A DNA stretch of 64,000 nucleotides from Convolutriloba macropyga (Eukaryota), in contig NC_134470.1 of NCBI RefSeq assembly GCF_964194025.1, positions 30,008,001 to 30,072,000 on the forward strand. Reading direction: 5' to 3'. Of the stretch, positions 12,501 to 37,500 are shown in pieces. Both the position numbers and the translations under genes were made by a program. The notes under the pieces were generated by a model. It had not been told where the DNA came from. It did not search any database and worked only from the letters and a program-made list of their open reading frames with translations. Every line of letters begins with the position of its first letter. The stretch's first letter is position 1.

Positions 12501-15500
12501 TTGCTAACAGTCGCACATAAAATTGGTTGTTGCAAGACTGAATAGGCAATGCGGGATAATCTCGAAGCTAAGGCACTTTGTTCTACGTTACCAGTTACTT
12601 GAATACTAAAAAAGCGTAATAAACCCAATTATACAGTACGGCATACTGGTTTATGGATGCTGCACCTTTTCTTCTTTAGATGTAGGTGTGTCCACTAGAC
12701 TTCTTGCATCTCTAAAATTACTTAAAATCCAAAACTCGAAAACCAAAATTGAGCAAAACTCAATTCGTCACCGTGCCTCTCTTCTGTTTAATTTGCTGAA
12801 AATGCAAAGTCTTCTCCCAGAAGATGGGATAAACGCAAGCAAGAGGCAGGTTTCCTATATTTACCATCAAATAACGAATTCTTACATACATGCGAACGAT
12901 GAGCTTGTTCGAAAAATCTTTTTCATTGATTACAGGTGAACCAAAGCTCATACTAAACCTCTTAATTTTTTGCTGACTTCTACGCCAAAATTTTGGCGGT
13001 GCCTTCTTCAAAGGCACCGCGGGCTCATTTTTTGCACTCAAAAGTTCAAATGTTTCATGTCTTAACATAGTTTTTGACAATTGATCTTTCCGAAACTGAC
13101 ACTATAGAACATGTAGCAATATGAAATTTTTCTGTCAAATGGGGCAATAGAGTAAGTACAGTATTTGGTGCTCTTAGCAGTAGAAGGATGCTAAGGTTGG
13201 TTTCTATGCTTAAATGTGATAACAGTTTTTTATTAGTATTATCTGAGGGCAAAAGTATTTTTTCACATTTTCGCTGTCTTTTGAGTTTGTGTCTAATAAG
13301 TTTATCAGTTTAAAAAAATGTAGGGCACTCTGGAAAGCAGGTCTGACGACCTCGTTGCGTGTCCTTTCCTGGCCTTATTTTCAATCATGGTCCTATAATT
13401 AATTGATGTTTATGATGTTAAATTGTTGATATTTTGGTTTAATGATTAATTCCGTTGTCTTAAATGATGTTTGATTGATGTTCAAAATGTATTTATACAA
13501 ATTTTGTCGTATTAATTGGGCGAGGATAAATTTACTCTCTCTCTCTCTCTCTCATTATACTCAACTCTGGGTGAGGAATGGAGTGTAAATAATATCCTCC
13601 TCATAATAAGAATCAAAAGCATGAGATAAAATGTACCTCTGAGGAATGAGTAGAGGGTGTGGGTGGTGGGAAGGTGAGAGTGGGGCAGCCACGTAAGTGG
13701 CACTTCCTCCCTAGCCAGAGAGTGGGCTGCCCTCTGCAACTGGGGAGGGAGACTGTCGATTCCTCTGAGCAGACGAGACTCTATCTCGTGCAGACACTGG
13801 CGAATGAAGCAGAGCCACTCGTTGAAGAACAGACATTCCTGAAGGAAACAACTGCTATGTCAAAAAACTGCTAATATGAAGTTATGTCTTTGTGACTTGA
13901 AGGAACTGGAGTTTGACCTGCAAGAGCGGTATCTAGTGCCAGGGGCTAGTGCTAAGATTCTTTTCTCTTGAAGCTAACCAATGTTACTTTCTTAAATTAA
14001 ATCTGAATTAAGAGTATTTTTGAGTATTAGAGGCACGGGAGTGGTAGCAGATGGAATCATGAATTTTATCAGAGCTCAAGATTTTTCTTGTTCTATATTT
14101 ATCAACCAAACAAAAGCTGCAAACTTGATAATATCTTAGATATCAATTCGATGTTTCCCAGCGAGATTGATCTTTATATATAGGTCGTTAAAATGATGTA
14201 CACAAATTTCACCAAAATATGATTGCATTCAAATTTAAGAAGCTCTGAAGTACATAACCAGCCAATTCTAACAATAATTTAATATTACTTTTCTTTGCGT
14301 TAAGCACAATTTGTCAATAGGAGAACAATAAGTTGGTTCCCAAAAATAGACATATTTCGCTAAAAAGCACAACAGTTTATTGAAGTTCATCTCGTTAAAA
14401 TTAGTCAAACCTGCTGAAGCAAAAGAGACAATGTCTCGTTGCCTGAAGTGCCATCTGAACTGAGGATAGTTGAGCTGAATCGACTGGGTGGGTGGTAAGG
14501 GAAAGACAACACAGTGGGCTCAACGAACAAGGACGCTTCTTCATCTGCCACGTTTAGGAGAGAAGGCAAGTGGTCGTAGCAGAGGTCAATCGACATTCTG
14601 GCTTGGTTGACTTCGTTCTCGAGGTCAGCACCCCCGTTTAGGGCATCGGGTGACAACGGGAAGTATACAGCGCCCAACTTCGACATCCACTTGAAGAATG
14701 GCTCGTTCCTAAGATGACTCCGTATTATAGAAGCATTTTATGTATAAAGTATACATTCGACAGAATCATTTCAAGATACATATCTGCTCAAATAGTTTAT
14801 TTGAAATCTCATAAAGCCACCACATCACTTTGAGAGAAATAAACTCAAAAAAGAAAATTTAAGGAAATCTATCATCAAATGCAACCAAGACATGGTTGTG
14901 GTTTATTTCATTATATTATCAATCATATCGATATAGTGATACTTTGTTGTCATACAACGCTGACTAACTTTGTTCGCGCAACAGTGTTCACTCGATCACG
15001 CGATACATCCAAGTAGTCGGCCGTGGAAGCATTCCTCCACTCGCATTTGTCCACAAACCAACTGGCCACGTGATCCAATTCTGAAAACAGCAACAGCAAT
15101 GACAGCGAGACAAGATGATAGACAACTGGAAACAACTTCTAAGTCAACTTTGGAGAAATTCAATATGGAACAACTCATCTGCGCCTAATCAACTATTTTC
15201 TTCTATCTTTGTTTTATGACCCCACCAACCTTACCCTTCCGTTACGTTATTTGAACGCAAAGAAAAATGAGAGGGTTTAAAATTTGTAAACACATAGAAC
15301 TGTTTTAACGTTGAGAACTTGATAAACAAAAATCAGAAGTCCACAGATAGAAAAAGCCATCTACACAATTAAACAGTTTCGTGTTTGATTAAGAGAGATC
15401 AAGGAAAATTAACACAAAAACTTCAATTTCCATAGTTAATATAAACAGTATTTGGTAAAATTTCGCAAACCAAAACCAAATAACTGAAAAATCTTCTGCC

Positions 15501-18500
15501 ACCGTGATTTTGCACAAAAATTAATTTTATAGCAACTAACCGGTGATATTAGCAGGTGGGAGAGGGATTCTGTATTTCCTCAGACAGTTGACCTCTTCCT
15601 TAAGGTCTCCTTTGGTGAACGTGTTCCTCAGGAGAGCACATGCCATCTCAAGGTCACTCTCACTTGACATCATACGTGCATACACATGCTAGTACAACAA
15701 CCAACAAATCACAATGAAAACAACAATCATATGGAAAGGTAATCATTTTGGTTAACCAAATATAAAAATTAAACTTTTCAAAATAAGATAATTTAATTGT
15801 GTCTGTTGTGTTGTTTTTAACTTAAGTTGGCACAAAAGATCAAATAAATGTTCTCGAAAAATTATAGCTAGTTTCATCAACATATTTTTAATTATCTCTG
15901 ATACCCTATACATACTAGCACTTGCAACTTGCCCAGAAATTTGACTTTTATCGGAATATTTTGAACACTAAAAAATTAGATTTCCATCAGGACTCTTTTG
16001 AGGGAACAATAGCCAACCTGAACTAAAAACTCGATGAAATCGTCATTTGCGGCTGAAATTTCGGACGGTGATCTACGATTTTGATCTCCTTCTCCATCAT
16101 TCAACACAGTTTTCAAATGCCTCTCAGACGCTTGCAATATTTCCTGACCCAGGATCGAATAACATCTACTCAAACCTTGTGTAGATAGACATTGTTTCGC
16201 AATCAAAATTCCATTCACTATACAGAGAGCCAAAATCGGGTTTCGAACTGAAGGGTTGGAACAAATCTGCTTCCAGGTTTCACCAGGTAAAGTTTTCACG
16301 CTTTGTTTGATTGCTCTACTCAAGAATTCTGGTTTCAGACTTAGTTCTGATTCGCTTGGTTTGAAATTTTGTGCATCGAATAAGTCGCCACCGAATTCGG
16401 GCTTGTTCAGTACAGTGTCGTACGATATTGGACATAAGTTGAGTGACTTTGGAAGTGAGAAACTGTGTTTGGGTTCACCCACTAACCATAACTTGTGGGC
16501 TGAATCAGGCTCTAAAAGTATATGCTTGAAATGAATACAGGATTGCATTTTTCATATGAATAGCTCTGAAGTTAATTTTGATTGATAATTTCACATGGTA
16601 CGATTTTGGTTTTTTAATAATTCTAGAGAAAATTGACATGCAAATATAACAGAAGCAAGTTTTCATGCACTTTATTTATAATTTCAGAAAATTGGACATT
16701 TTTTGAGATAGTTTATGTGAAAAGCAAATTGGCTCAGGAAAATTGACAAAAAATTTTTCTGAAAAGCCTTTAATGAGAGTGTAACGTCATCGTGATGTTT
16801 TCAAAATCTTGTGAACTCAGAAAATGCACTGACTAATCATCAAGCTTTTGAATATTCTCATTTCAGATGACTCACCAGTACGTTGCACTATTTGAACCAA
16901 ACTTCCAAACACTCTCTGTAAGAACTGTTTGTCAACTGTTGACACGTGTTTCAACACCACCCAGTTGATCTCTGAACTTGTGAACCTCTTCTCTATAAAC
17001 TCTATGACGTAAGAGGTACTGGGTTCCGTCACTGGGTCAATCACTGTCACTTTGGGTGAGTCCTGGGAACTCTATAATAATGGTTTTACGTCAGCTTCTA
17101 TTGACTGTACTCAAAATTACAAATAACAAATGATTGAGGAGTTTGAAATATAGACATTCAGAAGCTTAGAAATGCGCAGTATGAGTCCTCGTGCGTTATT
17201 CTAGCTGAATTTAGTTAGATACACTTTTTGTCAAAACTGGTCAATAATGTCGAGATAAGATTGCAACTCTTTGAAAAATTCGAGAGCCATAACTTCGCAA
17301 CGCAAAAACAATTCCTCTGAAATTGGAAAACAGCATCATTAAAATTTTGGCTCAACTCGGAGATGGTCACAGCTTCTTTATGAATTCTATCTAGCTTTGC
17401 TTTGATCAACTGTCATCTTTCTGCTTGTTTCTAAACTCTGACCTACAGAAAAAAACGAATTCGTTCAATAAAAACTGGAGTTCTTTTTGTTTCATACTCC
17501 CTTTCTTATTCGATATCCAGTTGAAAACTATGCGTGTTCTTATACTATTATGTTGCTATGTGTAAACATTACACGCGCACGTGTGGACACAGCATTTTAA
17601 AAACGTCTCTTCGTACCTCGGCCAGTTTCTCAATCCTGCTGACAATTTCATCCTCGATATTTGCATATTCCACGTGATCAAGTCCTCCTCCGCTTAGTAG
17701 TGCATCTTCATTGCTTGACTGAGTGCAAGGTAATGAGACCACGAATCCAGACTTAGATTCCAGCAACCCTGCCAGACTCTGCTTCGGACTGCTAGGGTTC
17801 TCCTCATCGTCACTTTGGGTAAAGATCACGTTTATAATCGGCAGATTGTCCTAGAAAGCATTCATTGTTTCAAACATCAAATTTTAGAGAAGACTGATAC
17901 GTAAACAATTTATACATGCAGATTCACCAATTATTGTAATCCGTTGATTATTAACTGTGCGTTTAAATTTTTGAGGGAGGATTTGAGTTCCGCATATATT
18001 TCTTGCCAAAAAAGCATTACAAGCAGCATATAATTTAATAGAAACTATAATGTTCGTTTCATAAAGCTTCATTCTCATCCTCAGTTTAAAAAAATAATTA
18101 CAACTTAATTATCAGCTGCAATCATCATACGGTTACTCCAGCCTATTATTTTAACTAACCTGGACAAATAGTTTGAGAGCTGAACTGAATCGATCAGGTC
18201 TGAGGAGTCGGATGACGATGAGTCTGTGTACGTCTCTCCAGGAGTCTTCGTCATCCTTGGGCATGGACACACTCTCACAGTTCTCACACGAGTACCACTT
18301 GAGCCAGGCGTCACTGTTCTCCACGATGTCACGACACAGTCCATGCAGAGGCGAGTCCTGATACACAACACAGATTAAACCAATCTCCTTGACTAGCAGA
18401 AAAATATATTTGGATCGTGATATGCGAGAAGTAACATTGAACATAGGCATTTAATCTTGAAGGTGTTGAATAATTATACCTAATTTCCTGTCCATTACAT

Positions 18501-21040
18501 TACGACTTCTTGTTGCCCTTATAGGGGTTAATTTGAAGAATTTTGAATCAATGTGGCTTTCCAAGTGCTGGATAGTTGAGTACAGCTTGACATTATCCGA
18601 GGGCTAAATTGAGAAACTTCGAAAACAAATTTTTTAAAGTTTTTTTTACTCGAAAGCTTCCTTTTTCAATTTAGTGAATTTAGGAAATTGGACGTAAACA
18701 TACCAACTTAGACATTGAAAAATATTCACTTCACAATAACGAGGAAAACTGTTCAGTGGCATTCGATTACTTGCAGATTCTAAAAACTGTAACGGCCCAA
18801 CAATCAATAATTTTTGTCAGCAATAAAAATACAACTGTTCAAATGATCAAGTAACAGTTAGACTTCATTGATGAATCATTCGTGAAAACTCCTACGATGA
18901 ATTGAATATTTTAATGGTTTTTTTCCTATTCTCATTCAGGAATTTTACCTCTCCGATTTTAACATAGCTGATCACTGATCAAAAAGATTGGCTTATCTCT
19001 CCTTTTCATAAGTGCGAAAACAAGACACCTCTGATTAATCTAACAACTTATCGGGTGTGAAACCTGGCAGAGAGTGATAAACTGGGTGTGAAACCTGGCA
19101 GAGAGTGATAAACTAACACCAAAGAAGGCAAAAATTTCGAAAAAGCACTAAAGTGAAGACGGGGTACAGATGGGGTACAAAAAACAGGCGAAGATTCCAA
19201 AAAAAGTCAGTTGCTCAAATTGACTTTCATCTAGATGATCTTTTGAACACCTCAAAATTATCTTTTGAAAGCATTGTTCGCCAATAAAAAAATACAAACA
19301 AAGGCACGCATATAACAAAAAAGGCTACAAAGCTAGTTTGAGAGCAATTAAACAAAAGCATCTTCCAGCAGCAAAAAAAAAATCCTAGTCATGCTACCGG
19401 GCAAATGCTCCGATCAGTCATCAACTTGCGTTGCAAAGGATTGTGGCATGTTGCCCCAACTATGCTTCTGCGATAGATGAAAAAACTACCATAAGTTTAT
19501 TGCTTTTCAAATAGACGACTGCAATCATTTGAGCAAATTTTCAAACCTGTTAATCAGTACAGTGTTTGATTTCAAAATTATAGTGTAGGAGCAGCTACAC
19601 AAGGTCCGTCTCTTCAAGCAAACTGCAAATCATTAATTCTAAAAAAACAACTGATAGGTTGCTAGAAGATATTGAAGCCTCAGAAACAATTTAAAAGCAT
19701 GAGACCTCAGAAAAATTGAAAAATGGTGTTATTAAAAAGTTTTGTGTGATTCCAATTGCGATTTATGCACTATGAAAGTTCAAACAACTTTCAGGGAGTA
19801 CCTCTACATAAATCATCATATTTACGTAAACAAAAATCATATTGAGACAAAGGACAACTTGAGAGTGACGCAAATCACAAGCGACCAAAAAAGTTATCTC
19901 CACTAAGAGTACAAACTCACGTCAAGTACGCGATGTCGTCAAAAAATTGCGAAAAGGAATGAACAAAAGGCTGATTTAAACTCAGCGTGGCGTCACTGGT
20001 CGTATCAAAGGACGACAACATAGCCGAAAGAGTTCCGGCAACAAATTGAAAATTTGGCACTAACTAAAAATTAGATGAAATTAAACCAATATCAGTCAAC
20101 GAGACATTTTCCTGGCAAAACAAGAAAAGCTAAATGTAAAACATTATGACTATGAATGAATCATAACCATGAATTAAACGCTTTATGAGTCACAGGACAC
20201 AAAAAAATCGCCTACAATTCTGGCAGCTCTAACACATTGTAGGCAACGCGTCAATGAAAGATATAAGTAGTCAAAATTGGGGTGGTCTACCGCACAGAAA
20301 AAGGATCGCTTCATTCTAAAGCCTCGAACCTCAGTTTATGTTCTTTATGCATGATATTTTTTCTTCTTTTAGTGCCTTAACCATTGTGCCAAAGAGACAT
20401 CAGATCTACATTTTTTCGGATATTATTATACCATTATGTTTCAAGGTTAGTCCATACATTGAGTTCATTGATGATCATCATTTACTCATTTATCTTTATG
20501 TTTGACATATACCAAACTGAATAGTTTGCTTACTGTCCGTTTCGCTTCTGTTTTGTGTGCCTTTAAAAGCTATCACGCGTCTTGTGCGTGCTTTGAAATA
20601 TTGAATCCGTAACGCAAAAGTGTATCAAAGAATTGCTTTTATGGTATGCCCTGAGCCATTTGTTATCAAATTTTTTGGTTGAAAATTTATTTCATTTTCA
20701 AGGTACGTTTCAATTTTGCCCCACCACTCAAAATTAACTAATCTGACAGCCGTTTGTCAAGCTGTATTTGGTAACTTTGATAACTTTCTAGTCTTTCAGG
20801 AGAGATTGGTTTTGGTAATAATAAATTGAAGAAATATTATTAGATTTCACCAAAATTGTGAACAAATTCACAAGGTAATACATTTAAGTTATATACATAG
20901 GATTTACATAGTTAGAGTTTTAATAGTTTTCTTCGTCTGAGGGAAGAACTATAACGTCTTCATCATCAGGGGTTTCCTGAACTTTGGGAATTTTCCGAGG
21001 CTGAGGTTGAACGGATGCGGTTGGTTTTTCTCTCTTAACT

Positions 21041-21085
<45 letters not shown>

Positions 21086-22465
21086 TCTTGTAATCTCTGT
21101 TAAATCGCAGTAGAGCTGCCATTTCTCTCAACCCCAAGGACACTTAGCGAAGCTCCCATATATCACCTTTTCTGTCAAATCTCTTTATATGGAAGACCAC
21201 GCTGAGCAATGTGTCCTCGGGGTCGAAGAACTTCATCGACAATCGGAAGTACGTATTGTCGTTATCTAAACAGAGGAACATTAATTAGATCAATTTCTAT
21301 CTTTAGCAATAGACTCCTAAGGTTAAGAATTTTATATTTCTTATATCTTTTGCTCTGATAAAGTTTATACTACTGAATAAACTTGAGCATTTGAAGAATT
21401 ATATTACCTCTGAGGTCCCTGATGACTTCACAGCTTATAGAGTCCAACCGCATCCGCTCACAAGCCTCCTGATGAACTACAAGTCTGCCCTCTGGGTGTA
21501 TTCTCCCGTCGATGATGACGCGCAGCAACTCCACTTCCATCAATATGCTGTCCAGCATTGATTGGAATTGATGTTCGGGTATGCTTATCGTTTGGTAGAC
21601 AAATCTTTCGTTATTCGAGATTTTGTACAGCACAATTTCAAAATTTGAACCCTCTGATTCAGCTTCTCGCCACATCTTTACTAGGCCGGTTGATGTTTTA
21701 CATTCAAATTGATAACTAGGAGAAGTCATCTCGTTGAGTACAGTATTTGTTCACTCACTATTTTAGTGTAGATCAAATCAAATTCGCAGGAGTGATTTTT
21801 TGGGGAAATTGAGGGCTTTTTATAGTGTTTATCGGTGCATAACTCAAAAATATCTAAACAGGTTGAGATTATTTTCAAGTAATTTTAACATAGAGGAACC
21901 TGGGAATCAGCTGAGAATGGGGCGGTACAGCATTTTGAAGTCATTTTATCAGAACTACTGAAATTCAATTGAATACCCTGAAAATGGCCTCATATGGTAC
22001 GACCTATGCCCTACTGATTAAGCTTTGTAATAAGCATTATTGGTTGGATTAGATAATTAGGCTCCTAAGTTTTCGGGTTTATTTTTATAAATCTAAATCT
22101 TGACAAATAGTTGGTAACACTGCCCTACTTTCCTTCATCTTCTAACACAGATTAAATTTTATTGCAATTGGTTTGAACTTACCACTTAGGTAAACCGTTA
22201 CTATATACGTTCATAGTAACTGTTGAAAAGTTTTTCACTTGATAGGATATCGGGGTTGCTATAGATCGAAAGGAATACTCAGTCGAAATCTCTTGGGAAC
22301 TTTATGCCGGATTTTTCTAAAGAACTGTGCTCTCGTTGTTTTCTACTTATGCTTCCAATATTTTTCGATGATGATTCGAGTATCAAGTCAAAATTTTGAA
22401 AAGAATTTTATGCCAGGCTACTGTGAAGAGCAACGCTCTTCTTGTTGTTTTTTGTATCCGCACAT

Positions 22466-22511
<46 letters not shown>

Positions 22512-25500
22512 TAGATAAGAGCGGAATGATTTTTCGCACAGATAATATCAATAAAAAGCGAAAGCTCCGCACTTTCTTTATATGATGTTTTCAAATAGAG
22601 GGCATAGTCTTTTAAAGATTTAAATGTTCCATGCATTATTCAATTTCTTGAATATTATTAAACGAACTTGTTAGTCCTTTAACAAGATTGTGCAGAGTGT
22701 CAAAAGTTTATCCTCACCCGGAAGGTCTGTCTGGAGTCACTTTTTACGGGACGCTAGTATTAAAGAGAGATCATCTAATGCATGGGATATAATGTTATTT
22801 AAAGTTTTTGAAATATAACTATTAATAAGCTATGAAGTCTGACTTTAGCTAAGTGTAGTAAAGTTCAGCAATTACACTCACCTATTTCAATCATATTACG
22901 AGTATCAAATCACAACTTTGAAAAAGAATTATATGCCACGCTACTGTGAAGAGCAGCGCTCTTCTTGTTTTTTTTTGTATCCGCTCATTGATATTTAGAT
23001 CATGGATTTGAGTGAAATAATTTTTCGCAAAGTTTATATCAATTTGAAGCAAAAAGCTAAGGAGAGCTGCGCTCTACAGAATTTGGTATAAAATTATTTC
23101 ATATACTTACAATTGCATATTATTTAAAAACAATGCTGTTTTATATCGTTTATAAAACAATATAAAACAGCAGTAACTATATCTCTGTATAACTCTGTAT
23201 AAACAACAGTAACTATATCTCTGTATAACTCTGTAACTATATTGTTTTAAAAAAGTTCTAGAGATGCAAGAATAACTGCTGGACGAATTATACGATTCTC
23301 ATCAAAATCTCATTAGCATGCATCCAAAAATCTTGTTGCTTTGCAGCTTCTTGCGTCACTAGAATACATTAAACCTCCTTCTGGCTTTTGTCAGACCTGG
23401 CTACCTCTTGTCGAAGGGGCCAGGCTGAAGTCAGGTGGAGGATAGTCGAAAAAAACAGTCTACGAAACCTAAGGTTTTAAGGACTGTTTTTCCGACTATC
23501 CTCCACCTGAAGTATTTTCAAATCAAAGATGCCTGGATTCCCGGTTTAATTTAAACTGGAGCCTCGCATCTTTGCTGGGTTGTTCCTGAGAACAACACCA
23601 GATTTCCTAGCCTTTATAGAAAGGCGAGGACACCTAAACTAATATTTGGTTTAGGAATCATGTTCAAATGCAATTTCTGCGATCAGGACTTCGCTAAACG
23701 AAAGGAACTCGTGTTGCATAAGCATCAAAAGCATGTTGACCTCCCAAATCAGAACTTTGTTTGCGGACATTGCTCAAACACTTTTACGCTCGCGAAAAAC
23801 TTGGTTCGGCATTTGAAAAATGTCCATAAATTTGCGCGTTCTGTTAGATGCAATTCTTGTCAAACGTTTTTCGGACATGAGCAAGCGTTGCGAAAACATT
23901 GTGCAGACGAGCATTCTGTGGTGGGTTCAGTTATTCGAACTGATCCATCCAATTTCTCTCAAGAAGATCGTTTTATTTTGGAACATGAGAGAAAGTCAGT
24001 TCGCAAGCACTTCCAGTCATTCCGACTCAAAATAAACCACGGTTCAATTTTTGACCCCCTTTGAATTTCTCGTGCTCCAGGAACGAAAAATTACAGATTT
24101 TATCACGCCGAAACTTCACCATTTGGTGACTGCGAAGTTCGCAATCTGCATAGAGGTGAAGTTCACCAAGCCTCTAACTCATGATAGTACTCTTTGTTTC
24201 TTTCACAGTCCAATGGAGAGCCTCTCCACATCATTGATTTCTGAAGAATATTTCGGTCATATTGACAAACTATTGACAAAAATAAACGTGTTTTGCACTG
24301 CAGGAAGAGGGTGGGTGATAGAAAAGTTAAATGTTGTCGAATTGAAGATTTCAAAATATTCCCCTCTTCGCGCGGGATCTTACATTGCAACGCCTCCTGA
24401 ACTTGAAACACAGCGCAAATCAGTCTTGAATATCAAAAACATGAAAGACAATCTGTGCTTCATTTACTCTGTTTTAGCCGCGCTCTTCCCCGTTAAGCAA
24501 AACCAAGAGAGACCGCAAAGTTACCGCCAACACATAAACAGTCTCCACTTCAACCCGCGAAAAATACCAGTGGCTTTAGCTGATATACCGGTTTTCGAGA
24601 AAAACAATCACCTGAAAATAAACGTGTTTGCTTACGAGTGTAGCAAAATGTATCCGGCTTACATCAGCAATTATAAAAATTCAGCGAAGCGAATCAATTT
24701 ATTGTTGCTGTCAGATGAAAATAATTGGCACTATTGTTTGATAAAGAACTTGGATCGAGTTCTAAAGGTTTTACTTCGCTCGGCCGCCACCGCTAGCTCG
24801 AAAAATAACGTTCGAAAATTCTGCGAGCGTTGTCTGCAGACTGTTGCTCGCGAAAAAATTAAGCTTCACAAATCGCTTTGCGAGCATCATCAGCCACAAG
24901 TTATTGAGATGCCGCCACAGGGTTCTACCGTAAAGTTCAAAAACTGGCAGAAGACATTCAAATGGCCGTTTGTGGAGTATGCTGACCTAGAGGCTCTTGA
25001 AGTCAGAACGGAAGATTTCGAAGTGGCCGAAGAGTTGCTCGAGACTGGATTAAATAAAGGTGGAGCATCTAGCTGTGTTACTGAAAATCAGTATCCTTGT
25101 AGCTTTGGAGCTGTTCTTGTTGACAGCAGAAGTTCAAGTGTGCCGAGGCGAAGATTGTATTGCTGTTCTGATGCAAACTTTACAAAAATGGCTGAGATGG
25201 GCAGACAATGAGCGTCAACGCTACAGATTCCTAAAGATGCCCAGTTTTGCCAAAAGGGAACTATTGAACAACTGGTTTGAACCCTGCTGCATATGTCAAC
25301 AAATCTTCGAGTCTGATCATGAAAAAGTAGTCCATCACTGTCATCTCACAGGCACTGTATTTGGCGTTGCTCACAGTAGTTGCAATTTATTGGTTACGGT
25401 TGGTAGTTTTCTCCCTGTTTTCTTCCATAACTTGTCTCGTTACGATGCCCATCATATCATAAAGTACATGAAGCTGGAAGAAAACGAGACTCTCTCAGCT

Positions 25501-28500
25501 ATATCTAGGACAGAAGAGACGTTTATTTCGTTCTCAGTTCAGGTTCCCATTAGAAGTTACTTAAACAAATGTGGTGTCGCGAAACTTGTACGCAATGAAT
25601 TGCGCTTCCTGGACAGTTTTAATTTTATGGCCTCGAGCCTTAATTCACTGGCACAAACGTTGCAAGATGCCGACTTGAAATTACTCCGATTCCACTTTAA
25701 ACAATTTTGTGATTCAGATTTCAAGAAAATAAGAGCAAAGGGAATTTTTCCTTATTCGTATTTAGACTCATTCCGTAGGTTTGAACTTGGCTTTCCTGCC
25801 TACGGTGACCATTGGAAAAACACTCTAACCGGAAGAATTGATGTTACTCAAGAAGTGTATACACGAGCTGTTGATATGTATCATCTCTTCGGTTGTAAAA
25901 ATTTTGGAGACTACCGCGACGCTTATCTGCAGACAGATGTGTACTTACTGGCAGATGTGTTCGAATTGTTCCGCTCGGTGTGCATAAAAGTTTATCGTTT
26001 GGATCCTGCTCATTTTTATAGTGCTCCTAATCTAAGCTGGGATGCAATGCTGGTAACAACTGATGTTGAGTTGGGGCTTCTGTCCGACGTTGATATGCTG
26101 CTTTTCTGCGAAAAAGCTATTCGAGGTGGTCTCAATGGCGTGGGAGCGCTGAGACATTTTCGAGCTAATAACAAATATCTTCAGAATTTCGTTAGGAACG
26201 AAAAGTCCGTTTTTGGCGCTTTTTTTAATGTTACCTTACTCTATGGTGGCATCATGATGAAAAAGCTTCCAAAGGATGGCTACAAGTGGAGCGAGTTTTC
26301 AAACATCGATGAGCTAATTGGAAAGTACAGGTCAAATACCGACTTTGGCTACTTCGTTGAAATTGATCTAGAATATCCGCGAGAGATTCACGATGACCAC
26401 TCTGATTTTCCCTTCGCTCCCGAGAAACATGTTATCCAAGACGATTGGTTGTCTGCGTACAGCAAAAACTTAGCGGCTAACAGATCTGCTGTTCCGAAAT
26501 TGGTCGAAACTTTGTTCGATAAGCCGAATTATATATGTCACATTGAAAACTTGCTATTTTACATCGATCAAGGTTTGAAAGTTGGTAGACTTCATCGAGT
26601 TCTGCAATTTAATCAGTCTGACTGGTTGCGTCCCTATATCGAAAAAAATACGGTTATACGAAAGCAAGCTTCAACAACGTTCGAAAAAAATTTTTATAAA
26701 CTGATGTCGAACGCTTGCTTTGGCAAAACAATGGAAAGCAAACGAAATAGAAAAAATATTCAGTTTGTATCTGATGAGGCGAAAGCCTCCAAACTTACGT
26801 CGAGGCCGAGTGTCAAGTCATTTCAAATTATAAGCGAAAATTTGTGTTCCGTTTATTTTTCCGTACCGAACATTAGATGGGACAAACCAACTCCCGTCGG
26901 AGCAGCCATCTTGGACCTTTCAGAACTTGCTCTGTACCATTTTCATTATAAAGAAATGAAACCGAGGTACGGGAAAAAGATTTGTGTCACTTACAAAGAC
27001 ACTGACTCGCTTCTGTACAGAGTAGAAACCGAAGACTTGTATGAAGACATGTACGAATTTAAACATTTATTGGATCTCAGCGATTACCTAACTTCTCATC
27101 CTCTGTTCGACGCGAGTAATAAAAAAGTGCCCCTGACAATGACTGGCGAGTTGAATGGTTCAGTTTTGGAAGAGAGTGTAATTCTTGGATCTAAGATGTA
27201 CAGCATCAAGTTTCAAAGGGGAGTAAAACAGAGTGCCAAAGGCATGCAAAAACTTGTTAAAAAGACTCTGCATCATGACAAGTTTCGTGAGTGTCTTCTG
27301 ACCGGAGTTAGCAGTCGAGCACCAATGACAAGAATTCATTCAGCAAACCATCAAATAAAGGTTACAACAACAAACAAAACGGCTCTGAGTTGTTTTGATG
27401 ACAGAAGATTCATACTGGATAACGGTGTTGACACTTTACCTGATGGCCACAACAGCCTCAATCAAACCCCAACAGTGACCTTTGAATCGGATTGTCCATC
27501 ACTACAGGATAGTGACTGTGAAAACAGTTCGATTTCAAGCGAAGAAGAGGAGAAGGAGGAGAACTTCGAGCTGATATCGACAGTAGACCTTTCTGATTCC
27601 TGCTCAATAGCTTCTACTACGGTCTCTTCTTTTGGTAAAAACGCTTTTTGCAGTTCAGTTTTTACGAAATAGTTATTATGTACTTATTTTTGTTTCAGCT
27701 CCACCCAATCCTGGCTTTATACCTCGAGAAGTTGATGACTCGGAGCCAGTTTTTAATTGGAGTGATTTCAGTGATGAACAAGATAATAGCGACGAAGATC
27801 GTTGTCTACCCCGGAACCCGTTTATAGATAATGAAGCAATTGAAGGAGAATGTAGTAACAGAAGTGGCGACGAATCTTGTATCATTCAGCCTATGCCTGC
27901 AAAGAGGCGACGACCTCTTGTTTCCTACTCAGACTCAGATTAAAAACACATGGTTAGCAATACAAATTAAATTATAAAATGTTCAATGTGTAATTGGTTT
28001 GAGATATACTACTGAAAAATCTCATCAAATTCAACTCATTAATTAAGCCAATATTTTTAACTGCGTTTAACACTAAAAATCTGAAATGCTTCGTTGCCGT
28101 AAGGCGATCCCGAAACTTTGTGTGTTGTGTATAGCCCACCTTTTGAAATATTTGCAAAGCTGCATATAAGCAATACAGCCCGCATAAGTTTGAAGATAAA
28201 GATTGAGGGGGAGGTGACGAAGCAGTTTCGTGAATGTCAAAACGAACCGAAATTTTGTACAGTGAATTAAATCGTTCTTGGAAATGAGTGAAAAAATTTA
28301 GCGGAATTTTCAGGCTGTTCCAGAATACAATGTTTGTTAATTTCTTGTTTCTTTTTTGTTTGGCTGAGCTTTTGAATGTTGATTGAAGTTGAGTTCCCTT
28401 GAATTTTTTTGGAGATGTACTTACAATTTGAAAGCGGGGACCTGAGTTCATTCTTGGAAAATTGTCTGCCGACCAAACACCTCCAAAAGGAAACTTTAAT

Positions 28501-31500
28501 AAACGTAATTTGCCTACTACTCCTTTGATCGAAATGTTATCCATTGAATATAATTTGGTTTTTTGAAATATTCCTTTTGGTGTCAATAAAAACTTGACTG
28601 AATCTCTCTCCGATAATAAAGAGTTCAACTGCTTCTGGAAGGGCTTCAGAGAAGAATAGCTTCAGAGTAATTGGCGCTCCTGTCAGTTCGGGGAATAGGG
28701 TAAGATTTTTTGACGCCTCTTGTGATGAGGTCAAGTCGAAACTGACAATAAATTTTTTATCGAAATCCTGCAGAGAAATTTTATTACCGCCATTTTTAAA
28801 ACCCAGCGCTGTTAGTGTGTTGTGATATACTCTGACATTATTTTCAGTGTCAATTGGTGTGCCTGCTATAGGTAAGCCATTTCCTCGTATGATTTCAATT
28901 CTTTTTATTTTATACTTGTTTTACAGAAAAGGGTTTGTCTCTTTCGATCCTCTGAACTTAACGTTTGCTACCATGCACATTGTTAAACGTCTGATTGGCT
29001 CCGTTCCCAAAATTGATTCTTTAACGAAAGAATTTTGACCAGATTGCATGATAAAACTTTTGCAAAGAAATTCTATATAGGGGTACCTTGCTGGTGATTT
29101 TAATAATGCCTTCTCGATTGAAAGTCGTACTGATTCAGTGACAGTTATCTTGCGGACAAACATGGACGCTTTTTCTATTACTGCCGTAAACAGTTTGTCG
29201 TTATCGTCGGCCAAGCTAAAAAGACTAGAGTTTAACTCGAATGTCGACTTCAGGGACTATAAGTTTTTCGCAACTAAAAAAGTCGACATAAAGGGAACCA
29301 TAGAGGTTAAGCGTGTAACCTGACTCCAAGGTAGCTTTCAAACGGTTTTGTAACCACTCAGATTAATTGGCGTCTGACGAAGGCTCTGAGTTGTAACTGT
29401 ATCCTTGACAAGCGGCCCAAGTCTCTTTGCTATCACTGTTCGTTGTTAATTATGTCTCAAGAAATGCTCGATGGTGGTAAGAGTTGTTGCTATCAGAAAT
29501 CAAAATACCGTTGGCGTATACTTCGACCTGTGAGAATAGGCTGTGTAGAGCATTGTTTGCAAATACAACTTTGCTTGCGTCACTTGCTTTTACGCGATCT
29601 TTTCCATCTGGCGTGTAGATAGACACTTGAATTCCTAGTTGAATATAGTTAAGGTCAATGCAGTTGCGCTGGTCTCCGCTGATTAAAAAGTCTAATGTTG
29701 GTCCTCTTGAACCGACTTGTGGGTAAATTTCTTGATCGAATCCGCTCTCATAATTCACAAGAACACTAGGTTTCTCAAAAAAGTCTAAAGCTGTATGCGT
29801 TACAGGGTTGGCGATATCTGCTACAATGCTGGTGAACTCAGTACTTTAGAATCTTACGTTTGACAAAATATCTGATCGACTGCGTTTCGTCTTGGTTGTC
29901 TTTAAAGTGCTTTGGGCTGGCCTCTTGCGTGTTGGTATCTCTCTTATCTCTAGTTTGTTTGTTGATAAGGGGTTTTGGGTTGCGCTGCGCCCCGCCGCCT
30001 GGCGAGCGGACGGCGCGGTAACCCGCGAACCGCGGCCGGGAGACACGTGCGTCAATCGCAACCGTTTCGGCGGGCGCGGGCGGGAACGATCGGCTGTTGT
30101 CGATTCTGAAATTGTTTTTGAAACTCATTTCTTCAATGAGTCTTTTGCTGCAGATTTTAGTTTCTTTTTTCCTGCTATCATTTGCCCAATCTCAGGAATT
30201 GCTGCTCGCTGTAATAAGATTGCGTCCCATTTTTTTGGCAAATGGTAAAGCGTACTTTTGTAGTAGTGGTAAAGTACAGCGACCAATTCGTACAGCTAAT
30301 GCGCCCAATCCTGCGGCGCCTGATCCGAACTGCCGTGCGGGACGGCCATGAGTCAGAAAGTTTTCTTCATTTCTCGCAATTTGTGCTTCATAGTGTGCGT
30401 CCATGCTTCCAATCAAACCAACTGTTTATTGGGTAGCCGTTGAGCATAATGAACTACTTTGGTAAAAACTGAAATTTCAATGTCAGCCAGCTTCGGCCTA
30501 TTGAGAGAAATGGCATCAGTTGTCCGGTTTCGTCGCGAATCGTTATGTTTATGGATTGAAATGATGACTTGAATACATTTTTCCATTGCAAGTTTGAGAA
30601 CGATTGATGGCAAATGATCGCGTTTTGTGTCTTTTGTGTCGAGTTGTCTGGAAGGGCTGTTGTTCTAAGAAGTGACGTTAATTTGTTTCCAAGAATCTGT
30701 TCTTGTATCAAATCGCAATAAACAAAAATTGTGTGACGCCCACCGGAGATATCTACTGGATATTTAGGGTTGACACCAATTTTAAGTATGTGTGTTCCGA
30801 GAATGTTTTGCAGATCTGGTGAATGAAGTTTTATACTTGTTGGACTTCTCTGTTCAGTTTCGTCTTTGTTAGTTTATCTTCACCGGAACTGGCGGCGGTC
30901 ATAAAACCATCCTCATTCCCTGTTGATGCCTGGTCTTTTTGGCCACTGTTGCTTAATAGCTTTAGTTTCTGGGTATGGCTTGAAATGCACCATATGATAG
31001 GCCAGTCATTTTCATGTTTTGTTCTGAAGCTTTTTGCAAAAATTTTTTGCATCAAATTTTCAATTGTTGGGTAAAAACCAGTGTCAATTTTGCATTTGAG
31101 GTTTGCCTTTTTCCGAAGATGGTACTGTTTTCTGTCGGCTGGTCGACGACGGCGGCGGCGACCTATATCAGTGAAAAGTTCTTCTGCGCTCGTTGGTTCT
31201 ATTGGCTCTTCATCATCCGACGAGGAATCTGTTTCGTCCATATGCGGCTCTGTAAAACCGTGTGTAACGTTTTTAAACTTTACTGGCCATGATATTTCGA
31301 GAAGTGCCACTTGCCATGTTCCGAATGTTTTGTTTAGATCTATTGGTTTGGGGAATAGATTTGTGAAAGCCGCCATCAAGTTGCCGGAATACGTTTCCGT
31401 GGAAGCGTTGGAGACTAAATTTATTGTAAAAGTATTTTCAGTTGGATCCATTTTTTTAAAATTTCTGAAAATTTTGTCAGTTCTGATTTGTAAAATCGGC

Positions 31501-34500
31501 CGACTATTTCTCCTCACGTTTCATGAGAAACAACGCGGTAAGTTGGAGGATTGAGTGTGAGGACTTTGTCTATTCTGAATATTTCGTGACTGAATTGAAT
31601 CTTATAACCCGATGAAATGTTTCGATGTTGCGTTTGATTCGAACGGTCTCACCAATGGCAAATTTGGGCTTTTGTATCTTGTCGTTTACGTTCAGTGAAA
31701 TGAGATAACATAACTTGTGTGCTGTTTGGTTACGCTCTTTGGAGCAAGACCTGTTATCCTGTTGACTCGAGAGTTAATGACTTTGAGAAAATTCTGCAGG
31801 TTATTTATATATGTACTGGTGTGATTTTCTTTTAAGAACTTATAAATTAAAGACTTTATGGATCGAATGTTTTGTTCTGCATACGAACTTTTCTTTTCGT
31901 TCCGAGTTTGGTAAATTGCTTTTTCTTTCTGCTCGCAAAAATTTTTGAATGATCCCAGAAATTCTTTTCCATCATCAGTCCATACTTTTTCCGGTTTGAT
32001 TTTTGTCGTCATCAAGGCGAAAGCGCGTTTGGTTGTTGATGCGTATTTATCTTTCATAAGCTGAACCCTAAGGAATCTACTAAGTGTATCGACTGCCACC
32101 AATAGATATCGAGTGTTTCGATTTTCTGTGGACAATGATTGCATATCCGCAAGATCAATTGACCATAATTCATTCAAACGATATGACTGTACTTTTAGGC
32201 GTGGAAAACGGTGACGTGTTTGTTTGAACTTTGTCTATGTTGAGCTTGTTGTTAGGTAGGTTTCCACTGTTTTACGTTTTAGGCCTGTTGATATAACCAG
32301 CCTGTTGATACTGCCGTAGGCTGATGTAGTATTCGTGTTTATATAATTTTGTTGAATAGTTTGCAGGTCCCTGCTGTTTGTGATTGCTGATGAGATGACC
32401 CTTTCATTTTTGCATTTTGTGCATGTAAAGTTCTCTCTGTCGTACTCTTCAGCCTTCTCTATCCCTGAACATTGATTGTGTACCCAACCACAAATTGTGC
32501 AGTAAAACAGTGGTTTCCTTCTTTTGCTTTTTCCCAACAGTCCTACAGTTTCCACATGTCAGCTTTCTCGGAGGACCGGGGTTTTGCTCTATCCCACTGG
32601 TTTGAAGAAGCAACTTAATAAGCTTTCTACCTAATAGCTTTACTATCTGTAGCTGAACATGGAAAGCCATGTGGTGTTCAAATCTTTTGCAAGCTTTGGG
32701 CTAACTGATTTGGCGTTTGTGTTGGCAACTAGATGCTGGGCAATTTTGAGCTCTTTTACTAGGGTAAGATCTGCTGGAGAAATTTTTTTTGTAGGGTGCT
32801 GAATGTTTATTAAAAGCTCAAACAAATTGCTGTCAGATGGAGGTCCTCCAGTTTTCCTTTGAATTTTGCCTGTATGCTTATCAGTTGTAACGGTTGTTGA
32901 GTTTTGTAAAAGTTTAATAATTGTTTTCGACTTCTCAATTTTTCCGCTCGAAAGTCCAGTGAGAGTCAATTCTTCTAATATTTGATTTGCCTCGTCAGCG
33001 CTAACATTTGTTTGATGATGTTCTCTTGTTATCATCTCCTCTGTCTCCTCTCCCGATTTTTGCTCCTCATTGAACGTGGCTGCAACACTTAGTTGGGCTG
33101 CGACATCGCTTTCGTTAGAATTTCTTTTGGTTAATAAAATTTCTTTGGCTGTTTGGGGCTTTTGGTTGCTCTCGTTGGCTGCTTCGAGCAATTTGTTATA
33201 AGTTTGTAAATGAATGAGAATGAACTTCCGTGCCTCGTGTTATTGCGCCTGTTCTTTCTTGAAATGATTTTGAATGGGATTGTGAATTAGTTTAATAAAT
33301 TGCAGTCGCTAGCAATTTTCGTTTTTGAGGTAATTTAACTTTCTTATCACAAATAAGAGAAAGAATGGTTTTAAATTTCTTGAACTGCTGTTTGGTTACA
33401 TAAGTATTAGCTAACGAGACATTGCCTTGAACAATATTGTATGAACAGTCAACTAAAAATTTGATAAAATTATCATCGAGATCAATAAGCTTGAAGCGCT
33501 TCAGAACAGGTTTGAAGTTGATGAGCAGTTTGAAAGTAGTCAGATGTTGTGAATTGTTCATCGAGTTCAATTTTCTTCTGCGAATTTCCTACTATATAAA
33601 ATATGCTGAGGTCGTTTGTTAAATGTGAGCAGAATCGTAGGTGCTCGCTGCATCTGGGATCCAAATCAATCAACAAATGACCGAATGGTTCTTTAGTAGC
33701 TAATTTATACGCCGACTGCACAAGATTTCTGCTTCCCAACTGACGACCTAGAACATCGACCTGAACTACATCTCGGGGATTTTTCAGTAAGAGCATATGT
33801 GTAACATTCATGTTAATTGTCTTCAAATTTGGACTTTTCTGGTACAAGTTATGCTTGAAAATTATGGCGTGTTGGTTTTTGTGTCGTCCAGAAATGACCA
33901 AATTCAAAAACTCTTCTTGTTGGCTGGCTTCTGCGTATACAGCATCAAAAATGATCAGTTGACGGTCCGTTTCGAGATGAGAGTTAATCTTGCTCCAATT
34001 GAGTCCTTCGATAATAAATATTATTGTGCCGAGTTTTATTTTGATTTCTGTATATATTTCTTGCCAATGCTGATAGACGTAAATTATTTTGTCAAATTGA
34101 GGATAAAACAGTTCTCTTTGTTTAATTATGATATCTGCCACAAGATGGGTTTTACCTGATCCACTGGGGCCAACTACCATCATCAGTAAGTGAGGTTGAG
34201 TAACAATTACTTTGTTCATTTTGGTGTTGGAATCCAACAACCAAGGCTGAAAGCGAGGACTGACCACATTTCTGGGCGTTCTGTTGAGAATTTGGTAACG
34301 AAAAGAAAATTAAGGCCGCTTGTTATTGCTGCGAATAAAAGAAAAATGTGTATGCTGTAAAATATTAGTGACCTTTCAATGCTCCCACAAAGCTTCCACG
34401 GGGGGCGCTCTTCATCGTTTTGGTCGAATATTATTTTACTAGCAATAGCCAAGTGACAATCTGGAGAGTCAGTCATTGCATTAGGGTGCTCGAGTGGGGT

Positions 34501-37500
34501 GGTGCAGGTGGTGGAGACTGACTAGATTGTCGTGATAATGTAATAAAATACTCTAATAGTTTAGAAGCTTCAACTAAAAGCTCAATTTCAGACAGTGTTA
34601 GATCAATTTCAGTTTGAACAAGAACAAAACGTTGACCCACTTTTTTCCAGCACTGTTTTCTCAACAATATTTCTGTCTTGTCGTTGACTTGAGATAATTG
34701 TAAAGCTGCCGGCTTCGAAATATGCAGTGTGAAGTTATCGGGGTCGTAATTGGTCATTCTAAAATGGCAATCCTTCAAAATAGGACCAGAATACGAGCTT
34801 AAAAATGATCCAAAATAGGACACCAGTTAAGTGCCCAAGCAGAAAGTGACTAGGAAAATTTGAAACCATATACACATATCCTGGTCCAAGTCCGTATTCT
34901 TCGTTCATGAATCCATACGCGTCATGAAATGCAGCATGTGTTCGTAGTATTTTCAAATGCTTAAGATACTCATGCAGTCTACTATTACCGGGTCCTATTA
35001 GTCCTGCATGCGGGGCCAGTTTATTGATGACTTGAAGGTCGGAATTGGGATCAATGAACATGCAAACTGCAAGAAATGCATTTTTTGTTGTTTTGTTCTG
35101 AGGGAAATGCTTAGAAGCAATTTCAAAATTGCTCAAAACTTTATTAATATCTGGAATAAGTATCATTAAATTGGTAAACCAACCGATTTACAGAACACTT
35201 ATATAGGAAGTGGTAGTCAGTGAGAGGTTTTTTGTTATCAGTTTTCTTTTGTTTGTTTAGATGAGTCATCTGGATTTTCCGTGCTTTCCTCCAATGAAGC
35301 ATCCCAGCATCTGCATTGCGCATTGTTCATTCCACATTGAACTTCCAAATAAGTTGAATGATCCCTTCTGTAGATCGATCCCCAGCCGGTTGCCTGAACG
35401 TCGATGTAATCCTCCAATGTCTGCTTGAAAGGGGAGTCTGTTTTCGCAAGACTCTCTATCTTTGCTAATATTCTGCGCTGGTATTCCGTCATTGTAGCAC
35501 ATTCTTGTCGTCTATTTGGACACGAGCGTTCCATCTCCCATATTGTTTCCATCAAGCTGTTTCGTTTTGGGGAAATATCCATTACTGTATCAGCGTTTCT
35601 TGTGAATTGTTCGAAGATGTCTCCTCGTCTTGTAATGTCTGATACATTGAATCGTAGTAATTGCTGATTGAACGTTTGAAATGCGCTTGTTGGTACAAAC
35701 ATTCTTGCTTTGATCTCGAACAGTACTTTGCTTTCATGACGAATATAGGATTTGATAGTCTTCTCCATGTGTTTTGGATTATCGTTTGTATAGACCAGAA
35801 TGTGTTGATGCTCAAATGATATGTCGTCGCACCATCTGTATTGCTGTTGCGTCTTTTGAGGATCATGATGTACAACAGAAAATTGCTACTCTGTAAAGTG
35901 ATCAATCCAGTTAGCGAGGCCCTTCGGTTGAAATTGTGTTGTCAAATTTGAGTCTCTTGCATCAATTTTGCGTCTCTTTGTTTGCGCCTCGAATGAGAAT
36001 TGTGAGGGAATCAGAACTTGAGCACTATAAACAATGTATCAAAAATTGTCAGAACTTTCTGCGCTGTTATTCATGGCACTTGAAGTCCGTTGAGAAATGG
36101 TTTTAGTTCGCGTTTCTTGGTATATATAGCTTTAGTTATTTGTTCAGTACTGATAATTGAGAATTGAGATTACTTTAAAATGATAAAAGCGTGAACTGAT
36201 TGAAAAAAGAGACACAGTTTAGCCCATAAGGTTATTCGAAATAACATCTGTGCCAAAGTGTCTCTTCGTACGGCATTGTAGTTGATGATTTTCACTCAGT
36301 AAATTTAAAACTGCATGTGGGGTAGTTCAATGGCATAACTATAGTGTAAACCTATCAATATGGTCGTGCCTATAGAATTGTTTAAGTTGTGTAGTTGTTG
36401 CATCTTGTAGTTCAGTGGTGTAGACGTCTTTGCTATTGTAATTAAGATTGATTTTGGCGTAGGTTCGAGACTAGATAGGAGGGATCCTAAATCTGTGCGG
36501 TAGACCACCCCAAATTTCACTGATATACAAAAACAAGAAAACTGACCACGCTATTAACAGTTTAAAATCAGATTGTGGCCGAAAAAACAGCAAGAAAGTT
36601 CTTTGAAAATAAAGCAAAGTATGGTAACTCAAACAAAAGCAGTCTAAGTTAAGAAATGTAATCAAATTAAAAATGCATTTGCTCAAATTGTACAACTTAA
36701 CAACACACAATTTCTTCTGAAAACAATTCATCCTAGGAGGACCTGATAGACGAGATGAATATAAAAGCCTGCAAAATTTCTATTGATCTTATCAACCTGA
36801 AAAAAAAACAAATGAAAAACTTCGTACTAACTGACCTCCAAATATTCACGGATAAACGTTTAAACTGCCCCTTACATAAAAATAAAGAAACTAAACAACA
36901 AAAGAAAAAAGCTGTAGGAAAAACTACTGAAGTCTTGGCTATTACAAGCACTCCAAACAAAAATCTTCAATTCAAATATTTTTCGCGTGAACTCCGTGCA
37001 AAGACTATAAACAAAACAATAGAAATAAGAATGTTAAGTGCGCAAAAACTTGAAGTTAAGTAAAATCATAAAAATTGTCGAAAATTCGAAAAAAAATGTG
37101 AAAAATGACAAAAAGTCAAGTCAGCCCTTCACTACCTCCATTCAATAATTTACAGACAATTAGCGTCAAAAATAAATTACAATGTTCTCCCGAAGACACA
37201 TTTTATTCAACACTCAGATAACATTTGTTTCTACAGGGGTTCTTTAGAACTATGCTGCGATAAAAAATTTAATCAACTGACAATTTAAAAAATGAAATGA
37301 TAAAAACTGACTAAATAATTATTTTGAAAAAAGACCGAAAACAAATATTTGGATGACAAATTTTTCAGAGTTCAGGTCCAAAAATCTAAACAGCACGTAA
37401 ATAAGAACCCCTCTCTTTGATTGATTACAAAAAAACGATTCGTAAAACAAAAGGCAAACTATTGCAAATAAATTAAAACTAAAAGTAAACTGATAATTTA

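Follow-up and report, generated by a model that had tools for sequence, protein, structure and literature searches.

A hairpin array abutting the DNA polymerase gene in a Maverick/Polinton lineage of Convolutriloba macropyga, apparently an undescribed control element

We describe here a stretch of 64,000 nucleotides from the acoel worm Convolutriloba macropyga (NCBI RefSeq assembly GCF_964194025.1, contig NC_134470.1, positions 30,008,001 to 30,072,000 of the forward strand; hereafter "the window"), which contains a decayed element of the Maverick/Polinton type and, immediately before the start codon of its protein-primed DNA polymerase (pPolB) gene, an array of consecutive hairpins. Because intact relatives of this element keep the array far better than their neutral sites, it appears to be a real, and apparently undescribed, control element. 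As to its nature, we tentatively prefer to see in it a cis-acting structured RNA located in the leader of the polymerase primary transcript of one Maverick lineage, a reading to which we would give not quite an even chance of being right, and several alternatives are weighed below.

A first-pass annotation of the window, made from its letters alone, had pointed to six back-to-back inverted repeats, the last of them ending 4 nt before an ATG at 23660, and all six (H1 to H6; Table 1) are indeed present there. The RNA fold of 23391-23659 consists of exactly these six consecutive hairpins, with a minimum free energy (MFE) of -133.5 kcal/mol against -68.9 +/- 4.6 for 200 dinucleotide shuffles (z = -13.9), not one of which folded as well; an energy no better than that of shuffled sequence, which the annotation had named as fatal to its proposal, is thus far from what is found. 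The corresponding z is -13.8 for the minus strand and -15.2 with DNA parameters. Taken singly, H1 to H6 have z of -3.3, -12.4, -5.3, -2.7, -3.7 and -4.4 respectively, H4 being equalled by 3 of the 200 shuffles. In the consensus of the homologues, H1 has a 7-bp outer helix around helices of 5 bp and 3 bp, and an invariant loop. The structured region extends beyond the six hairpins first noted, with a long outer hairpin (H0, weak in the window copy) and further elements upstream.

The argument that the array matters comes from its relatives, which were collected by exact-protein look-up (ten loci) and by a metagenome scan (58 loci). Homologous arrays, which we call type A, lie at the same place in five loci, namely L002 and L007 (cluster 1), L006 and L010 (cluster 2), and L070, and three further lineages besides the window copy carry one. 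Between the window and L002 there is no nucleotide similarity over 2.8 kb upstream; it then begins 35 nt before H1 and continues through the polymerase gene. The intact copies have a larger array, with one or two H0 hairpins (stems of ~50 bp, rich in G-U pairs) before H1-H5: there are two tandem copies of H0 in L002 and L007, and counterparts are also present in L006 and L010, where ~110 extra nt are found within the H6 loop. When L006 and L007, both intact and located in GCA_964194025.3, are compared, their polymerases are 80% identical at the protein level and the four-fold degenerate sites have fallen to 39%, that is, to saturation, whereas the H1-H5 block, aligned over 317 nt, retains 82.7% identity. 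The block of the window copy is 75-77% identical to those of L006 and L007, with four-fold sites (counted per reading-frame piece) at 31-33%, so that between lineages the block stands at 75-83% against 31-39% for saturated sites of the polymerase gene. There is not a single indel within H1-H2 (131 nt) in three lineages, and the spacing of H3 and H4 is constant save for 3 extra nt in L010. Across the H1-H5 block no conserved open reading frame (ORF) and no 3-periodicity of substitutions were detected. Considering this high identity, the lack of indels and the lack of coding signals together, we conclude that the block is non-coding and was under strong purifying selection in the active lineages. 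A hidden small ORF within the array was considered separately and ruled out, because stops occur in all frames and the substitutions are not 3-periodic.

The window copy itself is a dead element (at least eight frame changes and at least 14 in-frame stops over 13 genes, by tblastn), and its array is a fossil of the module. A second decayed copy, L070 (ERZ25071359 ctg32121, at a contig end), is 94.3% identical to window positions 22554-30364, so at least two copies of this sub-lineage exist in Convolutriloba macropyga assemblies. The two copies differ by 4.2% in the array, by 4.1% in the polymerase gene and by 4.5-5.6% elsewhere, and 5 of the 9 differences at paired positions break the pair; the array in these dead copies evolves at the neutral rate and is not under selection. 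The annotation had taken the persistence of well-paired stems beside ORFs full of stops and frameshifts as a sign of constraint, and this argument must be abandoned, since the copy is only modestly old and no selection is needed to account for it.

It had also allowed that the region might be an independently inserted palindromic miniature inverted-repeat transposable element (MITE) found elsewhere in the genome. No copy of the array was found elsewhere in the window and 69 loci (503 kb) by blastn-short and two covariance models; indeed, when the latter, R1 (H1-H2) and R2 (H3-H5), were run on 69 sources, they matched only the polymerase-upstream site of the five type A loci. Scans of IMG/VR with the polymerase and with a 21-nt H1 pattern gave no match. 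Non-functional palindromic DNA in general, be it nested foldback or MITE insertions or replication-slippage products persisting by chance, could account for the neutral rate of the array in the window copy and L070 and for the lineages that do without it, but is highly improbable given the level of identity between lineages whose neutral sites are saturated, the fixed position and register (H1-H2 without indels), the lack of dispersed copies in the same 503 kb and the recurrence of independent modules at the same place (see below).

The five type A sequences were aligned to R1 and R2. Standard pairs occupy 93.7% (H1-H2) and 92.9% (H3-H5) of the cells, and at most 57% when the partners are slid. 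Both sides have changed at six pairs in H1-H2 and at five in H3-H5 (11 of 90); column shuffles matched this count in 21 of 500 cases for H1-H2 and in none of 500 for H3-H5, and none of 500 matched the percentage paired for either model. H5, the whole of H0 and the inner half of H2, a hairpin whose outer half is invariant, have been replaced in sequence from lineage to lineage but retain their fold. The homologues therefore keep the structure with some compensatory change, which the annotation had required of them, and we regard this covariation as supportive, although not strong, evidence for a selected fold.

The annotation had further noticed that several pairs are G-U compatible, and had seen in this a hint of RNA or single-stranded DNA. 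We counted wobbles over all pairs predicted on one strand or the other, which makes the count symmetric, with G.T standing for a wobble in the sense strand and A.C for one in the antisense strand. For the H1-H6 core the G.T:A.C ratio is 8:2 in the window copy, 12:4 in L002 and 6:4 in L006; for H0 it is 4:4, 23:0 and 12:7 respectively; over the three lineages the total is 65 against 21. The hint was thus a good one, the excess being on the polymerase-sense strand. The L002 array folds, moreover, with an MFE of -269 kcal/mol in the sense and -179 in the antisense orientation. Together, the G.T excess and this difference favour a single-stranded sense form, which could be RNA or a displaced + strand of DNA, over a purely double-stranded site.

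Under the reading that we prefer, transcription of the polymerase gene would start before the array, within the 1.5-kb intergenic region that separates the divergent genes, the nascent sense-strand leader would fold into H0-H6, and this fold would set the amount of polymerase made. Two versions may be imagined. In one, the array remains in the 5' untranslated region (5' UTR), where a structure of about -130 kcal/mol would block scanning unless bypassed. In the other, it is part of an intron or outron that would be removed at a conserved TTTAG|G located 5-10 nt before the ATG, and folding would govern processing. The second version is suggested by a motif, K-GTTTAG-G, which is present in all type A arrays, with its end 5-10 nt before the ATG, and looks like a 3' splice acceptor (TTTAG|G); near-variants (GTTTAG-A, GTTTTAG) lie 3-19 nt before the ATG in the type B arrays described below. 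In a related acoel, Symsagittifera roscoffensis, 30% of genes are subject to spliced leader (SL) trans-splicing (PMC9911081). In view of this and of the acceptor-like motif, the hairpins could sit in an outron or 5' intron and not in the mature 5' UTR. The annotation's idea of a structured 5' UTR or internal ribosome entry site (IRES) thus survives as regards a conserved sense structure directly 5' of the ORF, whereas from the mature messenger the array may be spliced away.

Several observations weigh against a structured leader. In H1, H3 and H4 there is hardly any variation in the stems, and invariance is more frequent among paired than among unpaired columns, so these hairpins testify to a constraint on sequence, not on structure; and covariation statistics drawn from no more than three to four lineages are weak. 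Cluster 1 shows a strong sense-strand bias, the other lineages a modest one. There is also an A/T-rich stretch 20-40 nt before the ATG that could be a TATA-like element and, if used, would place the start site at or after the array. The search for a transcript contig covering the polymerase N-terminus returned only genome-assembly proteins, and the NCBI gene model at L069, which starts ~1.25 kb inside the gene, is uninformative on the UTR. Lastly, the positional analogues of the array in more distant Mavericks are near-perfect palindromes devoid of strand bias, and look more like an element acting at the DNA level.

These analogues deserve some description. A second kind of array, type B, is common to L001 (a Tara Oceans contig) and to L004 and L008 (from C. 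macropyga), with very conserved blocks; the zinc-finger regions of their polymerases share only ~30-45% identity with their counterparts in the window and in type A elements, and since R1 and R2 match type A only, the two types are not demonstrably homologous. In seven metagenome loci (L029 1-105; L030 1040-1360; L035 3331-3500; L041 4941-5128; L043 2370-2535; L049 5098-5285; L052 1950-2135) the place immediately before the expected polymerase start is taken by long hairpins or near-perfect palindromes whose arms have ~45-86 paired positions, and six of these loci have no stronger fold anywhere along their length. By sequence they form five unrelated groups, L041/L052 and L043/L049 being homologous pairs in which both arms have changed together. 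All in all, at least six other sequence-unrelated modules made of hairpins or long palindromes occupy the same position in more distant Mavericks. No comparable module was found before the polymerase in L003, L005, L009, L011, L016 and L020. Present in several unrelated lineages and absent from others, the polymerase-upstream module is recurrent, not universal. Two side observations may be added on these loci: a strong hairpin lies ~700 nt downstream of the polymerase in L052 (~6521) and L022 (6061-6200), and in L003 (cluster 3, without the array) the integrase region is tandemly duplicated (16542-17637 and 18979-20074), with the 134-aa and 193-aa gene calls occurring twice.

The most serious alternative, which we nevertheless consider doubtful, is a palindromic cis-element acting at the DNA level in the divergent intergenic region, either an enhancer or promoter built of palindromic protein-binding sites or a cruciform serving replication or recombination, which could for instance be recognised by the polymerase's own zinc-finger and Endonuclease VII-like N-terminus. 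The strong sequence conservation of both arms and loops, the location between divergently oriented genes, the fold obtained with DNA parameters and the unbiased palindromes of distant Mavericks all speak in its favour, as does the Endonuclease_7 match of the polymerase, this being a family of branched-DNA nucleases. So does a short motif, TTCTGG(C), which occurs 2.4 times per kb inside arrays and 0.33 times per kb outside (a seven-fold enrichment); it is found in the arrays of the window copy, L002, L006, L030, L041, L043, L052 and L001, often at the 5' base of a hairpin, is located at the base of several unrelated arrays, and the 16 nt around it are identical in L043 and L052. Nevertheless, the sense G.T excess and the 90 kcal/mol difference between strands in L002 are unexpected for a double-stranded binding site, and six different palindromes in place of one repeated unit would be unusual for a factor-binding array. 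The internal origin that the annotation had also listed is not required, because protein-primed replicons start replication at their termini. Finally, L003, L005, L009 and L011 have the same polymerase architecture and no array.

A broader proposal may be considered, and we hold it to be possible, if on balance improbable: the module upstream of the polymerase would be a general, so far undescribed cis-element of animal-associated Mavericks, repeatedly replaced in sequence yet kept in position, through which the element may sense or limit its own replication. The zinc-finger/Endonuclease VII-like N-terminus of the polymerase might, for instance, recognise it in folded form, and its role would then go beyond that of an ordinary leader. 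It would cover the type A arrays of acoels, the type B arrays of acoels and plankton and at least five palindrome families in metagenome contigs.

The annotation had also proposed a small-RNA precursor cluster; such precursors, miRNA-like or producing small interfering RNA from hairpins, might be element-borne or exploited by the host. Part of this holds: H2 (80 nt) and the H0 hairpins of the relatives (100-150 nt, ~50 bp, many G-U pairs) are precursor-like in size, the sense-strand G-U bias is typical of RNA hairpins, and Rfam returns weak matches to generic miRNA precursors (33 bits against a gathering score of 117). The remaining hairpins do not follow. Animal pre-miRNA clusters are made of units of ~55-80 nt with arms of ~22 nt or more, whereas H1 and H3-H6 measure 38, 51, 27, 26 and 23 nt, too short for Drosha and Dicer, and it is the short hairpins, not the long ones, that are best conserved. 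A search of the elements and of the 503 kb of loci revealed no complementary target. Comparison of the window array, the type B loci, L006 and the whole window with Rfam gave no family at the gathering score except one tRNA, and ARAGORN detected no tRNA-like gene in any array. We therefore think such a cluster distinctly unlikely.

Less probable still, in our opinion, is a transcription terminator or insulator that would protect the polymerase gene against rightward read-through from the host or from the left end. This possibility is raised by a conserved unit, two copies of which precede the array in every type A lineage (Table 1 for the window; L006 4736-4792 and 5165-5204; L007 4853-4907 and 5135-5179; L070 ~380-450), whose layout is ...TATGCCAGG(C)TAC..., then a 7-bp GC-rich hairpin (GAAGAGC-NNN-GCTCTTC) and a T run on the + strand, and which is thus terminator-like; in all, 8 terminator-like sites lie upstream of the array where 2.0 +/- 1.5 are expected. 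The GCCAGGCTAC part of this unit is similar to the 5' arm of H1 and to a block of the type B array. However, no conserved T runs follow H1-H6, six to eight different conserved hairpins far exceed the need, and Mavericks encode no RNA polymerase of their own (none was found in Pfam scans of the window and of the relatives' genes). Hairpin termination is not known as a mode of nuclear RNA polymerase II. A precedent on the other side is offered by the linear pPolB plasmids of yeast, in which RNA stem-loops terminate transcription (PMC6211774).

Returning to the array as a structured RNA leader or, failing that, as a DNA site, we may ask what it resembles. We know of no Maverick cis-element of this kind, and full-text literature searches found no description of such an element or hairpin array in Mavericks. 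The nearest published item is the terminal inverted repeats of endogenous virophages and polinton-like viruses (PLV), which contain terminal palindromes of ~52 nt, discussed as possible replication primers and associated mostly with non-pPolB replication genes (bioRxiv 10.64898/2026.07.28.741278). In both cases palindromes or hairpins are found in small integrating virus-like elements with double-stranded DNA, but the array is placed internally, 3.1 kb from the left end, adjoins the start codon of pPolB and comprises six to eight different hairpins.

Among larger viruses, herpesviruses have large palindromic origins between divergent replication genes, and the homologous regions (hr) of baculoviruses, in which imperfect palindromes are arrayed, serve as enhancers or origins. 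The likeness lies in palindromes occupying a divergent intergenic region beside a DNA polymerase gene. These sites are double-stranded, dedicated origin or transactivator proteins bind to them, and the hr units repeat one sequence, whereas the hairpins described here all differ, show a wobble bias towards the sense strand and belong to a replicon expected to initiate at its ends. The long perfect palindromes of L029, L035, L041, L043, L049 and L052 do have the form of an hr or origin (one repeated or perfect palindrome, with equivalent strands); the acoel array, with six different hairpins and its strand bias, does not.

If the array acts as RNA, other parallels come to mind. Pararetrovirus shunt leaders and IRES elements are highly structured viral 5' leaders, and adenoviruses, distant relatives of Mavericks, have virus-associated (VA) RNAs; with all of these the array shares several hundred nucleotides of stable, conserved sense structure directly 5' of a viral ORF. 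It differs from them in having no sequence or Rfam similarity at E <= 1 and no conserved T-run terminators of the RNA polymerase III type inside, and it does not look like a VA-type RNA polymerase III gene, there being a T run after H2 in the window copy only (A and B boxes were looked for by eye). With polycistronic miRNA clusters it shares several back-to-back hairpins within a few hundred nucleotides on one strand, but only H2 and H0 are precursor-sized, and neither a family match nor targets were found.

The interest of the array lies in the fact that, as far as we know, almost nothing is known of how Mavericks/Polintons control their genes or their replication, these elements being annotated by their proteins alone. 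A non-coding block of ~320 nt at ~80% identity, set against the polymerase start and with positional counterparts in unrelated lineages, is a candidate for such control that can be mapped, and the array also provides a marker for polymerase starts and for lineage relationships in Maverick annotation. Should it act as RNA, it would add a structured leader, or a structured RNA that is spliced out, to the adenovirus-related group of viruses; should it act as DNA, it would point to a cis-site in the interior of a replicon whose ends alone are supposed to be active.

The carrier element is collinear with positions 4921-21143 of the C. macropyga element L002 at 72-79% nucleotide identity (blastn). 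It has what characterises a Maverick/Polinton, that is, a protein-primed PolB, an rve integrase, an ATPase of the A32/FtsK type, and terminal inverted repeats with a target-site duplication. L002 is bounded by a perfect 6-bp duplication, whereas that of the window element is only approximate (5 of 6 positions). The likeness to described Mavericks thus includes the short terminal repeats, the 6-bp duplication (in L002) and a length of ~16 kb; the difference is the polymerase, here with an N-terminal region of C2H2 zinc fingers and an Endonuclease_7-like match. The coordinates of all these features are collected in Table 1.

Table 1. Features of the decayed element and of its hairpin array (positions in the window)
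Feature	Position	Strand	Basis or remark
Decayed Maverick/Polinton, 16.3 kb	20266..36524	n/a	blastn collinearity; termini; homologues of pPolB, A32-like ATPase and rve integrase
Left terminal inverted repeat	20266..20331	+	~81% against 36461-36521; first 32 nt common to the L002 termini
Two small leftward genes, divergent from the polymerase	21090..21732	-	homologues of the L007 123-aa and 140-aa genes; tblastn outer bounds
Conserved upstream unit, copy 1	22391..22477	+	direct repeat; 7-bp GC-rich hairpin 22425-22441, then T run
Conserved upstream unit, copy 2	22914..23000	+	hairpin 22948-22964, then T run
AT-rich palindrome, 39 nt	23134..23172	n/a	adjoins 36-nt tandem repeats (2-2.4 copies, 23142-23242), just upstream of H0
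H0, long outer hairpin	23255..23365 (111 nt)	+	inverted repeat; z = -4.0
Conserved non-coding block H1-H5	23375..23635	+	without ORF
H1 domain	23383..23432	+	includes hairpin 23391-23428 (38 nt); fold and covariance consensus
H2, near-perfect hairpin	23431..23510 (80 nt)	+	fold
H3, two-tier hairpin	23524..23574 (51 nt)	+	stems almost invariant, apical loop variable
H4, 11-bp hairpin	23575..23601 (27 nt)	+	fold
H5, 10-bp hairpin	23605..23630 (26 nt)	+	4 of 10 pairs changed on both sides between lineages
H6, 10-bp hairpin	23633..23655 (23 nt)	+	3' arm is the conserved pre-ATG motif
Acceptor-like motif K-GTTTAG-G	23647..23659	+	conserved among type A arrays
pPolB gene	23660..27672	+	C2H2 zinc fingers, Endonuclease_7-like, DNA_pol_B_2
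Ten leftward genes, 5 of 10 broken	27975..36074	-	homologues of L007/L002 genes; tblastn outer bounds; Pfam
Right terminal inverted repeat	36461..36524	-	inverted-repeat search; termini compared with L002

The ORF that opens at 23660 is the true N-terminus of the polymerase (C2H2 zinc fingers), being collinear with intact relatives of 1330-1357 aa. The gene is broken by two frame changes, its aligned pieces are free of in-frame stops, and it matches PF03175 (DNA_pol_B_2; E = 1e-12, 48.2 bits, cut-off 25.8). Among 2407 homologues the best, at 76-77% amino acid identity, come from Convolutriloba macropyga assemblies (the C. macropyga assembly has more than 200 cluster members), and the zinc-finger region and Endonuclease_7 match precede DNA_pol_B_2 in this large family.

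Each of the two small leftward genes has one in-frame stop. The homologues of the ten leftward genes beyond the polymerase measure 210, 442, 183, 346, 380, 221, 248, 92, 135 and 280 aa, the 380-aa one being the rve integrase and the 248-aa one the A32-like ATPase. As regards the integrase, the 380-aa gene of L007 matches PF00665 with E = 4.7e-7 and 30.4 bits, just below the cut-off of 32.6, an rve match is on record for the 403-aa gene of L006, and the window homologue (31460-32534) is broken. The window ORF at 33482-34267 matches PF04665 (Pox_A32; 24.7 bits, cut-off 22.8). For a double jelly-roll capsid protein and an adenovirus-type protease, Pfam gave no match among the candidate genes. A search for a start-codon motif common to all genes of the element gave results that were inconsistent across genes.

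Two minor features of the element remain to be mentioned. Its second most stable fold, at 29941-30120 (~-56 kcal/mol per 100 nt), lies inside the homologue of the 183-aa gene, with an equivalent in L002 (14681-14800) and L003 (15521-15640); as a GC-rich stretch within a coding region it was rejected as part of the array, and is probably low-complexity coding sequence. In addition, a conserved ACGGTGGTTTAGGCTAAAAA is found ~115 nt inside the left end of the relatives, pointing outward (L002 5034, L007 2751, L006 2830 and L010 3833, on the minus strand); it was not found in the window copy, and has GGTTTAGG in common with the pre-ATG motif of the polymerase.

Outside the element, short repeats of the window at 44691-44739 and 45631-45735 also occur in the flanks of L002 and L003, a hint that the host genome is the same or a close one. 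The window further contains a 0.7-kb direct repeat (15-711 and 1669-2365, spacing ~1654 nt, 84-93%), a 242-nt unit in two tandem copies (11899-12382, 99%), a tRNA-His gene (44901-44972), and a MITE-like pair of 52-nt inverted repeats with a 188-nt spacer (51743-52034).

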